A program made the translations under genes and the position numbers. Of a stretch of DNA of 64,000 nt, positions 46,250 to 50,815 are shown piece after piece. The stretch comes from Guillardia theta CCMP2712 (Eukaryota; Protista; Cryptophyta): assembly GCF_000315625.1 (NCBI RefSeq), contig NW_005434669.1, forward strand, positions 1,152,499 to 1,216,498. The letters run 5' to 3'. Each line of letters begins with the position of its first letter. Positions within the stretch are counted from its first letter, which is position 1. The notes under the pieces were generated by a model. It had not been told where the DNA came from, did not search any database, and was given only the letters and a program-made list of their open reading frames with translations.

Positions 46250-46900
46250 GCTCAACTGACCGCCATCTTGGGGATCAAATGTCAAACTTCAAGTTCAAAT
46301 TTTCAAAATTTCAAATTTTAGGGCTCACTCGAACAAATTTTAGGGCTCACTCGGCCTCCGGCCGGTTCAAGTTCGGCCCCGAACGGCCGGGTCCGGCACG
46401 GTGACCCGGGCCGTCTCACGCCTGCTGAGCCTCGGAGCGCCCGCCCGGCGGCGCCGCTCCGATCTACTACTGAGCCGACTCCTGTTCACGGGTGGCCCAG
46501 TAACCGTGAGTCACTGTCACGCTCAGTGACTTGAAGGGCCCCGGGCCCGGAGCGGCCCGGCCCCCTGGAGCCAGAAACTTGCCGGCGCGGCCCGCCCCCC
46601 CAGGAGCGGCAACCCAGGGGCGGGCAACTTGCAATCATTGAACGGTCCTGGCCCGTCATTTTGACTTACTAGTAGGATCCGAATGATCCGACGGTACACT
46701 GGGCTGGCTCACGGTGACGGTACTCGGAGGCTCAGTACGGTACTGAGAGTCACCGTGCAATGGACCGCCGAGCGTGAAAGGCCATGGTTGTGACGGCCCG
46801 GCCCGCAATCCGATCATGGGCCCTTGTCCCGACTCGGTCCGGCGATAGTGGCAGGCTGCCTGGCCGCGCTGAAGTCGGTATGACGATGATACTACCGAAA
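46250..46900. promoter_or_regulatory. GC-rich palindromic island upstream of the FHA/coiled-coil gene
   Basis: CCGG/GGCC/TGAGTCA/CGGTAC-rich. Confidence 0.45.
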
Positions 46901-46987
46901 AGTGAACCGTTGATCAGGAAGGAGGAGCAACCAGTGATAGCGGTTGAGAGATTTAAGTTATGAGATACTAGCAGAAAGACGAGCGAG

Positions 46988-49762
46988 TCACTCGCTCCTG
47001 AGGATGATGTGGCAGCCCGAGTCAGTCTCGACTATCCCTGATACCTCGCCCACCTGCCAGCATGTCAGGCCGTCGGTCAGCTAGGAAACGCGCACGAACT
47101 TGGAGAGAGAAGGAAGCCTCCTCGAATGGTTTCTGCATTTTCCCTCGCGCAAACGTTCCCAGGTCACCATGATCTTTGGCCGAGGAGCAGTCAGAATGTT
47201 TGTAAGCAAGCTCCTTGAACCTAAAGTGAAAGTCAGTACAGATGAAGGTGTAGAGAGAGGATGAGGATGAGGATAAGATGCAAGTGATCAAAACGATTAT
47301 TTCAGTCTTCAGCGTAAGGATCGCATCATTGTGGTTAAGTTAAAGATGTGATGCGCGGAGAAAGTGTAAAACCTCTGCATTGTGTTGCGAGACGAGGAGA
47401 TATCGGCGAGAAGATCCGAGAGAATCTTTCTGGCTTCGTCCCTGCTTCTTGATCGGATCACTTTGCCCTCCTCATCCCTCCAACTCGAGGGCCTTCGTGA
47501 ATCTGAGAACATCCCAATCGTCACCATCACGAATAACCTCAGCACTCTTGCTCCGTCTTCTCAACGCCTCCAAATTCACCTTTGTGCTTTATAAGGATAT
47601 GGTATGCTCCCACCATTTCCTTCTGCCTCTTATTCGGGGGACATTTCTGTGTCTCCGAGCTTCGCTTCATCCCGACGCTCTCCTTCTGCCCTCGAGAGAT
47701 GACATACTTCCTCGTGCTCGCACCGAACTCCAGCACATCTCCATCCTTCACTTCCACCTTCCGCTCGGGCTACAGCGAAAGCGACTGAGCAGGGAAGGAG
47801 AAGAAGACCTTGTACCTCGATGTTTCTGCTGTTGACCTTGGTGCCGTGCGCCGATCCCAAGTCGAGGATGTAGACTTTCTATAGGCAAGTTAAGAGAGGA
47901 GGCGAAGAGCTGGAGGCAACCTGTCCCTCGGACTGTAAGATTGCATGCTGTCTGCTGACCGATGGATGCTCCATCACGATATCCGTTTCAAGGCTTCGAC
48001 CCAGGGTCTATAGGTTGATGTTAGAAAAAGAGTTGGAGAATGAAAGGCGATATCTAAGAACAAGATCCAACATCATCATGACACAAAATGCTGGAAAGTC
48101 AAGACACGCGTCAAACGATGATTGTTGAGCAGCATGACATGCGCAGGCAACACGAAAGTGCCATTTTGCATCACCAATTTTGAGTTTCCTGGCAGCTCAA
48201 CACGATCTACAACTGTTTCGTCCTTGTATACAGTGACGAAGCAAGGGACGGGATCTGCTGCTTCCTCTACAACATGTTGGTCCCCATTCTTGTCTTTCTG
48301 CTCGTCGACAATCACTGGATTCTCTTTTTCCTTTCCTTCATCTGCGTCCTCGGGATCATTCGATAGCGAGAGATGGGGGTGAGTCACCCGCAGTCTTGTC
48401 GTCGGCGATGCCAAGCTTCTTCTGGTAGTCGTGCAGGGCCTTCATAAACCCTGCCGATCCTCAGCGACAGCAAAGACGCGACGAGTTACCTTCGTTGGGA
48501 CGAGCGACCTTCCTGCACCTCACCACATGCGCGACCGCGCGAGAGGCAGGCCACTTGAAGCGATGGATGAGGTAGGCGACACAAAGCGACGCGCTCCTGG
48601 TGACCTCTGTCACTCGCCCATCGCCAACCCTTGAGGAGGAAGCGTGCACCTCGAGATTCCTGCTCCACAATGCACGAGTGTCGCATGCTTCTTCGAGATG
48701 GCTCGTTCGATGAAATTATTAGAAGCGTCGATGTGCTGCCGATTAAGTTGAGGGTCAGCTTCCACGCAAGCAGCAGCATTCTGTCACCTGCAGGATCCCG
48801 TCCGTGTCCACATCATCCTGCTGCAACCGCAGATGCTGCCGTTTGCTTCCGAAGGAGATGTCTTTGGGCCGTTGATGGATTGTAATGACTGAGCGAACAT
48901 TGAGATGGTCCAGGCTGGTCTGGGGCACCAGCGTCATTGGCAGAACAAGTAGAACAGCGAGGCATCAACCTCGTCCTTTGCATGATCCCAGTCCCCCAGG
49001 TACAGTTCTCCTGGTATCACCTCAGCAGGATACCTTCTTGGCTCTCGTGGTTTCCCAAAGGTTGTACAAAGTCCTGGGTACTTTTCCAGGACGGTATCGA
49101 AAGGAACATCAAGAAGTCGGATGAGGCGCGGAAGGGTAAACTCATCGCTCTGAAGGAATCTAACAACCTCATGCTCAGGTGTGAGAGCTGCTGAGCCGTA
49201 GAGGACAAGTTCCCTCCCCATCCACAACGACGGCTGCCATAACCCTCGAACCCCAAGGATTCGCTCTCGCTTCCTCTTAAGATCCTTGTGGTCGTTTGAG
49301 TCATGGCGGAGACTGGAATCTTCCAGCACCCTCCTGTTCCCACGGTTCACGATGGAGACACAGAAAGCACCGCACACGTTCCCCTTGTGAAACTCTTTGT
49401 GCGGCCTTACGTCCACAATAAGAGGAGGTTTCCGCTCGTTGGCAGTGCCTTGGAAGCATGAGAACAAGTCAGACGCAGTGCATGTTTCAACAGGAGCTGC
49501 TCGTTTCTTGACTTCTTCCTGTCCTTGTCCCTGTTTTGTTGAAATATCCTCCTCCTCGTCACCAGCCTCGTCCCACCTGTTTAGCAACCTCACTCACAGA
49601 AAGTATGAGATGTGGAAACAGAGCAGAGAGGGTGGATTCACAGAGAAACTTTGCTGCAAGACATGTGATCGACATCATCGAACATGATTCCTCTGTCAAG
49701 ATCTGCATGCGAGGCATCTGCGGTCGTAGATAGACCGCGCGTGCACCATCCTACCTTCCCAT
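46988..49762 (-). CDS. Rhodanese(CH2)-dual-specificity phosphatase-FHA-Pin1-type parvulin fusion protein (multi-exon)
   Basis: Exons splice in frame: [19 protein letters not shown] (rhodanese); [43 protein letters not shown] (DSP); [32 protein letters not shown] (FHA); [61 protein letters not shown] (parvulin). Confidence 0.85.
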
Positions 49763-50182
49763 GACGGTGAACGAAGGACTCGGTTTGAATCGAAGAGAAT
49801 CGATTAGACTCGGCGAGTCACTGATTCCGGCCCGGCCCCGGCCCGGCCGCCCCGAACTAGATGTTCTCTATTCAAAAGGTAAGAAACTTTTGTGTCCTAA
49901 AAAAGTAGTTGCCCCACCCACTTCCTGGGAAGGATTTGAGTAACAATTCGTCCTAGCTCTCCATGCTGATAGGAGGGAAGGAGTGAGGGAGTGAAGGAGC
50001 GGATCGAAGAAGGACGAAGACAAAGAGAAGAAGGGAAGGACAAGGAATAGCCAGTGCTGAACAACAAACCTCTCCTACCTGTCGGCGGACTCTTATCGTT
50101 CCGTTGGTCGCTGAGTGAAACAACGCAAACGTCCAACATCATTGAGTGGATCAAAGGCGACCTCCAAATTGTTTTCTCGAAC

Positions 50183-50815
50183 ATGGAAATTGATTTTGCT
50201 TTGTTCTTGTTGTTGCAAATTGTTCAGATTATTCTTCTGTTGGCAATTGCGTCGATTCTTCTTCTCCTTGTCTATCGCAAGATCGTCAGGCCCAAGTCAG
50301 GAGCATTCAAAACACTGATCGTTTTGGGATCAGGAGGGCATACAACAGAGATGTTAAGTATTGCAAGTAGTTTGCCTGCGCCGTTGATTGATGATGCAAC
50401 ATTTTTGATCGCTTCTACGGATAGGATGAGCGAAATCAAACTGAGACAGAAGTTTCCCGGTGCGATGGTGAAGAAAACTCCTCGTGCACGGGAAGTGAAA
50501 CAATCATGGATCACTTCTGTGTACACCACTCTGATTGCATCATTTCATGCAATGTGGTTTGTATTCATGATTCAACCTGATCTTGTCCTTTGCAACGGAC
50601 CAGGAACTTGTGTACCCATCGCATATTCAGCGTTCCTGTTCCGTTTTTTCCTTATGCAGAGATCAAAGATTATTTTTGCAGAGAGCATTGCCAGAGTGAA
50701 ATCCTTATCTCTCTCTGGAAAGCTCTTGTATCCGATAGCCGACGAGTTCGTTGTTCAGTGGCAGGAGCTCATAGAAAAGGCTCCACGTGCTCGTTATGTT
50801 GGCTTCTTGATATGA
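50183..50815 (+). CDS. ALG14: UDP-N-acetylglucosamine transferase subunit ALG14
   Basis: N-terminal TM; LIVLGSGGHTTEM, PRAREVKQS, PDLVLCNGPGTCVP, ESIARV..LSLSGKLL, F.VQW. Confidence 0.95.
   Translation: MEIDFALFLLLQIVQIILLLAIASILLLLVYRKIVRPKSGAFKTLIVLGSGGHTTEMLSIASSLPAPLIDDATFLIASTDRMSEIKLRQKFPGAMVKKTPRAREVKQSWITSVYTTLIASFHAMWFVFMIQPDLVLCNGPGTCVPIAYSAFLFRFFLMQRSKIIFAESIARVKSLSLSGKLLYPIADEFVVQWQELIEKAPRARYVGFLI

Follow-up and report, generated by a model that had tools for sequence, protein, structure and literature searches.

The window analysed here is a stretch of 64,000 nucleotides of the cryptophyte Guillardia theta CCMP2712 (contig NW_005434669.1, positions 1,152,499 to 1,216,498). Its minus strand carries a 13-exon gene whose predicted product, with very little doubt in our view, joins a rhodanese-like domain, a dual-specificity phosphatase (DSP), an FHA domain and a Pin1-type parvulin on one polypeptide (Table 1). 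Reading the locus as bacterial-style open reading frames (ORFs) was ruled out because the gene is broken into so many exons, and three-frame translation together with RNA contigs was used. On the reverse strand, three-frame translation showed segments of all four domains that shift from frame to frame and are separated by short GT..AG stretches.

Table 1. Features of the four-domain gene in the window (plus-strand coordinates)
Feature	Position	Strand	Basis
Four-domain gene, complete coding sequence	46988..49762	-	13 exons, 12 GT..AG introns, 608 codons and stop
Exon 1, 8 nt with start codon; the next intron has 178 nt	49755..49762	-	9 loose 5' letters of the X1 contig
Introns 1-6	49577-49754, 48920-48969, 48736-48787, 48597-48649, 48451-48489, 48342-48387	-	Contig joints, GT..AG
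Introns 7-12	48008-48174, 47879-47920, 47770-47815, 47503-47579, 47221-47372, 47054-47099	-	Contig joints, GT..AG
Rhodanese-like (CH2-type) domain, residues ~40-190	49015..49467	-	Pfam weak on window exon, clear in homologues; alignments
DSP domain, residues ~195-333, five exons	48392..49002	-	Pfam DSPc matches to exon pieces
46-nt phase-1 intron in the DSP-FHA linker	48342..48387	-	GT..AG, removed in X1, X4 and X7 contigs
FHA domain, residues ~367-467	47689..48246	-	Pfam FHA on exon pieces; alignment
Exon bridging FHA and parvulin	47580..47769	-	Uninterrupted genomic frame
Pin1-type parvulin, residues ~493-608	46991..47613	-	Exon pieces against Pin1 structures; tree

Transcript contigs of public RNA runs were placed on window positions 46900-49860. 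Three runs (X1, X4 and X7), from three studies and under two organism labels, each gave a single contig at the locus, 1834-1879 nt long and spanning 46940 to ~49578 with 0 mismatches. All 11 joints read CT..AC on the plus strand, equivalent to GT..AG on the gene strand, and all 11 internal introns were removed in the three contigs. Joining the minus-strand window sequence at these joints gave a coding sequence of 1827 nt, with the start ATG at 49762 and the stop codon ending at 46988. The 9 extra 5' letters of the X1 contig match window positions 49757-49765, and exon 1 with its ATG is placed by that contig alone. An in-frame stop lies 36 codons upstream of this ATG, and no ATG occurs further upstream. 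Additionally, ten RNA-like runs from five studies contained 0.48-0.54 of the 31-mers sampled from the locus, against a calculated share of ~0.53 for a fully spliced message, whereas DNA-like runs reached up to 0.97. The gene was therefore called expressed, based on the spliced contigs and on a 31-mer share near the spliced-only expectation.

At the junction between the DSP and the FHA domain, each of the three contig sets joined the last DSP exon (48388-48450) in frame with the linker/FHA exon (48175-48341), at 48341|48388. The first-pass annotation, made from the sequence alone, had drawn the gene between 46988 and 49762, had let this junction depend on a canonical 46-nt intron and had found no independent in-frame ATG for the FHA part. 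Both ends were exactly reproduced by the contig-based coding sequence, the intron has GT..AG borders and was spliced out in the X1, X4 and X7 contigs, and inspection of the spliced frame revealed no in-frame ATG between this intron and the FHA core. The same annotation had also proposed that retention of the intron yields a stop and a phosphatase-only isoform. By frame reading, the retained intron indeed gives ten extra codons followed by TGA, but the isoform itself was not seen in the contig data. At the second junction, the bridging exon encodes the last FHA strands, a linker with the motif NKRQKE and the first parvulin strand, HILIKHK. Because a single exon spans both, the FHA and parvulin domains cannot be separate genes.

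Environmental relatives showed the same order of domains. In locus L003, the uninterrupted metagenome ORF P0070 covers a part of the rhodanese and then the DSP, the FHA domain and the initial two thirds of the parvulin, and the remaining two parvulin exons lie downstream. Locus L006, from another collection, is arranged as L003 is, with the DSP-FHA-partial parvulin junctions inside one ORF. Because both loci hold the junctions inside a single ORF, the fusion does not depend on splicing. In locus L002 (Tara Oceans), a low-complexity stretch lies between a rhodanese-DSP frame and the FHA-Rotamase frame after it, so that the order equals that of the window gene; the two frames could possibly be joined in frame by a 178-nt GTATGT..AG intron, which would give a 667-residue product. 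The spliced contigs and the relatives with a single-ORF fusion thus uphold the claim that the four domains form one polypeptide.

Specifically, the rhodanese-like domain gave a Pfam Rhodanese match of E 9e-4 on its single window exon, which is below the curated cut-off, and clear matches in homologues; full-length relatives strongly matched all four domains in Pfam. Gly130 (in YG) occupies the position of the catalytic Cys of rhodaneses, and it is invariant in close relatives and nearly so in the wider family. A basic cluster, KRKRER, at residues 103-108 of the rhodanese is kept in close relatives and absent from the green-algal members. In a kinase-interaction-motif test, this lysine/arginine cluster and the hydrophobic residues with it (residues 103-112) resembled a kinase-docking motif, although they could equally be a nuclear localisation signal. 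In a language-model search, exon 2 was placed beside the rhodanese domains of DUSP16 and DUSP10, with scores below 0.9.

The DSP was matched by Pfam DSPc on exon pieces (E 3e-7 and 1e-5). Its signature reads H271-C272-GAGIS-R278-S, in agreement with the HCx5R(S) pattern, and Asp241, 31 residues upstream, would be the general acid; the D, HCGAG, SRS and R columns were invariant across the family alignment. The solved structures nearest to the DSP of P0070 were DUSP5, DUSP22, DUSP10 and DUSP16. A rhodanese followed by a DSP is the architecture of the MAPK phosphatases (MKPs). Judged by these residues, the DSP is predicted to be catalytically intact and the rhodanese to be an inactive docking domain, as in MKPs. 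The codon of the catalytic Arg278 in the phosphatase P-loop is itself split by a 53-nt intron (48597-48649; window 48596-48651).

The FHA domain was matched by Pfam on a 42-residue exon (E 2e-7). The residues of its phosphothreonine-binding loops are present (G393-R394, S408, H411 and N435, the last in SAHGTKVN), and its FGASTRKY motif is that of the kanadaptin/NIPP1-like subgroup. The solved FHA domains nearest to that of relative L002 were those of TbPar42 (2N84) and NIPP1 (2JPE). The NIPP1 FHA domain binds phosphothreonine-proline (pTP), which is all that its established ligands have in common (PMC3553949), and for that of TbPar42 binding to a pThr-Pro peptide has been reported (PMC6468809).

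The parvulin carries a complete set of key residues (H497, K501, R506, R507, C558 in SDCSS, M575, S599 and H602). The basic triad of human Pin1 (K63, R68 and R69) corresponds to K501, R506 and R507, and human C113, H59, H157, S154 and M130 are matched by C558, H497, H602, S599 and M575, respectively. Pfam Rotamase gave E 4e-3 on the last window exon and 1e-18 in relatives, and the core parvulin exon aligned with human Pin1 residues 103-141 at E 7e-13 and ~70% identity. The loop exon aligned without gaps to Arabidopsis Pin1At (1J6Y) and with a 4-residue gap to human Pin1. Because it shares this 4-residue phosphate-loop insertion with Pin1At, the parvulin was assigned to the plant type. No WW domain was found in the window protein, in which the FHA domain precedes the parvulin instead; plant Pin1 likewise has no WW domain. 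The parvulin of relative L002 scored 121 bits with Pin1At, ~88 with human Pin1 and 53 with TbPar42. From its residues, the window parvulin is predicted to be catalytically intact. All the motifs named in the first-pass annotation, namely an intact HCGAGISR with its upstream Asp, the FHA motifs GR, SxxH and S.HGT.VN, and the Pin1 phosphate-binding loop and catalytic Cys, were recovered in the spliced product. Its comparison with the FHA-parvulins of trypanosomatids fared less well: Pin1At and human Pin1 are far nearer to the window parvulin than TbPar42 is.

With exon 2 as query, an exhaustive phmmer search returned 45 proteins. The closest were unnamed marine metagenome ORFs with 58-62% identity, and Rhodanese-DSPc-FHA proteins of Chlamydomonas incerta, Chlorokybus, Trebouxia and Auxenochlorella were found at 33-38% identity; matches down to E 1e-11 have this architecture. 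Further members came from Chlorella variabilis and Micractinium. A profile search of a 5.8-billion-cluster collection, limited to 8000 candidates, gave few members. The green-algal homologues stop just past the FHA domain. In proteins such as KAG2441094 (Chlamydomonas incerta) and CHLNCDRAFT_138968 (Chlorella variabilis), which are annotated as hypothetical, the first three domains are colinear with those of the window protein, with identities of ~30% (rhodanese), 40-44% (DSP) and 35-41% (FHA), and the invariant catalytic and FHA residues are common to both. Unlike the window protein, they have neither the parvulin nor the KRKRER insertion, and their DSP-FHA linkers are often long and rich in arginine/serine (RS). 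Such RS-like stretches were observed in the DSP-FHA linkers of P0008, P0012 and P0019, and in the C-terminal tail of P0010; the Chlorokybus protein has an RS-rich tail. These stretches suggest a link to nuclear speckles or splicing. By sequence, the rhodanese-DSP-FHA proteins form a previously unnamed and unannotated phosphatase family present in green algae, to which the window protein belongs.

In the lineage of the window and in at least three environmental relatives, the protein carries the parvulin at its C-terminus. A metagenome scan yielded three loci. Two closer relatives on short Logan contigs, L001 (P0003) and L004 (P0071), stop right after the FHA domain, at the point from which the window gene runs on into the parvulin, and these may be either true three-domain forms or contigs that end unspliced. 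The only product spanning all four domains in the protein collection, among the matches listed, was P0070; a query with its FHA-parvulin part among proteins of 356-1132 residues returned P0070 alone, and the 608-residue window product was not found in that collection. The environmental introns (2117-2294 in L002 and 2200-2514 in L003) are full of low-complexity repeats of the CATA/CATG and TCTC types, and the spurious C-terminal tails of P0001, P0051 and P0070 are intron repeats translated by prokaryote-style gene callers.

Stand-alone FHA-Pin1 proteins of 214-343 residues were common, including one from Physarum, and the Atlas clusters were mostly of Chlorophyta and Euglenozoa. Stand-alone FHA-parvulins have been reported in trypanosomatids, Chlamydomonas and Plasmodiophora (PMC6468809, PMC5854754). 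The retrieved FHA-Pin1 proteins have a short loop that lacks the 4-residue insertion. A maximum-likelihood parvulin tree placed the three four-domain proteins with the plant single-domain Pin1 proteins, apart from FHA-Pin1 and WW-Pin1 (support 94/88). Most simply, a Pin1 domain of the green-lineage type was acquired by a rhodanese-DSP-FHA phosphatase; alternatively, the Pin1 domain may have come by recombination with a chlorophyte FHA-parvulin gene, or the parvulin may have been lost in green algae.

A full-text search of the literature for FHA combined with parvulin/Rotamase and DSP/MKP/rhodanese found neither the three-domain nor the four-domain architecture, and the TbPar42 paper was the only literature found on the Chlamydomonas FHA-parvulins. 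The four-domain fusion, described as unfamiliar in the first-pass annotation, is thus without a literature match. What is new here is the domain architecture, while each of the domains, the FHA-Pin1 pair and the rhodanese-DSP pair are known.

Several known systems share parts of this architecture. The MKPs (DUSP1/5/6/10/16) likewise have an N-terminal rhodanese without catalytic Cys followed by a DSP with HCxxGxSRS and Asp. However, the window protein adds FHA and parvulin domains, its DSP is about as similar to the atypical DUSP22, a classical kinase-interaction motif could not be demonstrated in it, and its nearest relatives are the algal rhodanese-DSP-FHA proteins, not the animal MKPs. We know of no MKP with an FHA domain or a parvulin. 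The TbPar42-type FHA-parvulins (trypanosomatids, Chlamydomonas, Plasmodiophora PbPAR1, Physarum and environmental protists) share an FHA domain, a flexible linker and a Pin1-like parvulin with the window protein, but they have no phosphatase, whereas the window protein has a rhodanese-DSP part and the canonical Met575/Ser599. The stand-alone FHA-Pin1 proteins retrieved here branch apart from it in the parvulin tree. Pin1At and human Pin1 have all the catalytic and phosphate-binding residues of the window parvulin, and Pin1At also shares the loop insertion; human Pin1 differs in having a WW domain where the window protein has FHA, and the Pin1 domain of the window is the C-terminal module of a phosphatase. 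KAPP (plant, FHA and PP2C) and NIPP1-PP1 resemble it in that an FHA domain steers a phosphatase to phosphothreonine. These, however, use the metal-dependent PP2C/PP1 folds and have no isomerase, and NIPP1 binds its phosphatase non-covalently and inhibits it.

Pin1-type domains isomerise pSer/pThr-Pro bonds, and proteins that become fused in one gene often act together. To our knowledge, Pin1-assisted dephosphorylation occurs only between separate proteins (PP2A and Ssu72). In the pairs of Pin1/Ess1 with Ssu72, and of Pin1 with PP2A, the same activities are needed, that is, recognition of pSer/pThr-Pro, isomerisation and dephosphorylation (PMC4350670). PP2A needs Pin1 on c-Myc; Ssu72, a Cys phosphatase, is specific for the cis form and is stimulated by Pin1, which trans-specific phosphatases do without (PMC4350670). 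Unlike the Pin1/Ess1-Ssu72 pair, which consists of separate proteins with Ssu72 in the low-molecular-weight PTP fold, the window protein is one chain with a DSP fold.

We consider it fairly probable that the gene encodes a 608-residue enzyme composed of an inactive rhodanese, a DSP, a flexible linker, an FHA domain, a second flexible linker and a Pin1-type parvulin, which would read, isomerise and erase phosphorylation marks. In this enzyme, the FHA domain would dock on pThr(-Pro) marks set by proline-directed kinases, the tethered Pin1 domain would interconvert the cis and trans forms of pSer/pThr-Pro bonds in the docked client, and the Cys-based DSP would remove the phosphate, either from the isomerised sites or from a docked kinase. 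The isomerase could thereby continually provide the conformer that the phosphatase can use, in the way that free Pin1/Ess1 serves Ssu72, and the flexible linkers of ~25-35 residues could concentrate isomerase and phosphatase locally around a docked, proline-directed phosphoprotein. Such a tight coupling of binding, isomerisation and erasure is a tentative proposal. Somewhat more doubtful still is its most specific form, a covalent version of Pin1/Ess1-Ssu72 with a conformer-specific DSP acting on nuclear proline-directed sites (the TP repeats of splicing factors or the C-terminal domain of RNA polymerase II). A nuclear role is suggested by KRKRER at residues 103-108, NKRQKE at residues 486-491, the RS-rich algal linkers and the nuclear location of TbPar42, and may be considered a candidate on these motifs.

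Several points weigh against this interpretation or limit it. The classical MKP target is pT-x-pY and not pSer/pThr-Pro, so the isomerase need not serve the substrate of the DSP. Pfam and alignment calls of the domains were based on exon pieces, relatives and scripted alignments. The linkers vary in length among relatives and contain no conserved motif, and therefore imply no fixed geometry between the active sites. The FHA-domain tree gave no resolution and did not show the order of domain gains. Minor isoforms, for example with intron 48342-48387 retained, may exist beside the contig form; the raw-read RNA run X19 had just three reads at the locus, and contigs lose rare variants. Binding, isomerisation and erasure by one enzyme is a plausible model, and DSP substrates of the pSer/pThr-Pro type and the MAPK activation loop would both be compatible with the data.

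The most serious competing explanation, which we regard as possible without favouring it, is that the protein is a genuine MKP whose DSP acts on the pT-x-pY loop of a docked MAPK, with the FHA and Pin1 domains serving only in targeting or regulation. The FHA-Pin1 part would then recruit the enzyme to scaffolds or substrates phosphorylated by MAPK/CDK, or isomerise phospho-Pro sites in the kinase, in the kinase's substrates or in the linkers of the enzyme itself, without passing one phosphosite from the isomerase to the DSP. The Cys-less rhodanese ahead of a DSP, the presence of DUSP5, DUSP10 and DUSP16 among the solved DSPs nearest to P0070, the position of exon 2 beside the DUSP16 and DUSP10 rhodanese domains (at those scores below 0.9), the kinase-docking-like basic cluster and the parvulin-less green-algal homologues all accord with it. 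However, the basic cluster is missing in the green-algal members, so a kinase-interaction motif is no trait of the family, and the similarity of the DSP to atypical DUSP22 is about equal. Moreover, the fact that at least three diverged relatives keep the Pin1 active site fully intact favours catalysis over mere binding.

It is improbable that the parvulin is a silent phospho-binding or structural module and the protein a phosphatase with two readers. The precedent is the peptidyl-prolyl isomerase domain of TbPar42, which keeps the basic triad and a Pin1-like fold and is nevertheless inactive, so conservation alone is no proof of activity; Tyr350 and Leu374 of TbPar42 stand at the positions of Met130 and Ser154 of human Pin1, and either single swap did not restore activity (PMC6468809). 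The window parvulin, however, has Met575 and Ser599 at these two positions, as well as Cys558, His497 and His602, and the L002 parvulin is far nearer in bit score to the active Pin1At than to TbPar42. Finally, it is highly improbable that an MKP gene and an adjacent FHA-parvulin gene were joined by read-through or an assembly chimera, or that the fused mRNA is minor beside a phosphatase-only isoform. In favour of this reading are stand-alone FHA-parvulins in many protists and chlorophytes, the FHA-parvulin ORF of L002, which starts with Met and was annotated as a gene of its own, and a retained intron that would close the frame after the DSP and could be lost from contigs as a rare variant. 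Against it are in-frame splicing in 3/3 contig sets, one contig per run, no in-frame ATG before the FHA core and a junction within a single ORF in L003 and L006.

If the coupling of reading, isomerisation and erasure is true, the window protein would be the first DSP shown to depend on prolyl isomer state; we know of no DSP for which conformer specificity has been reported. A reader, an isomerase and an eraser on one natural chain would offer a compact test system for cis/trans discrimination by a DSP, and the fusion hints at a physical coupling of Ser/Thr-Pro isomerisation and dephosphorylation. In addition, Pin1 outside animals and fungi is recurrently paired with FHA rather than with WW.

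Upstream of the four-domain gene, an apparently intronless Alg14 gene (window 50183-50812, plus strand; Pfam Alg14 E 7e-59) lies head to head with it. Because their start codons are ~420 nt apart in this orientation, the two genes probably share a bidirectional promoter region. GC-rich intergenic clusters of GGCCCGG/CCGGGCC flank the four-domain gene at 46508-46575 and 49815-49861, each after the 9-mer GAGTCACTG, which by itself was no more frequent than expected by chance. Similar clusters were seen near 8.3, 38.1, 53.5, 54.0, 59.3 and 62.1 kb of the window, and they resemble either an element dispersed in intergenic DNA or a feature of promoters or terminators. Downstream of the gene, at window positions 46312-46353, there is a perfect 20-nt direct repeat, with two copies of CAAATTTTAGGGCTCACTCG spaced 22 nt from start to start.

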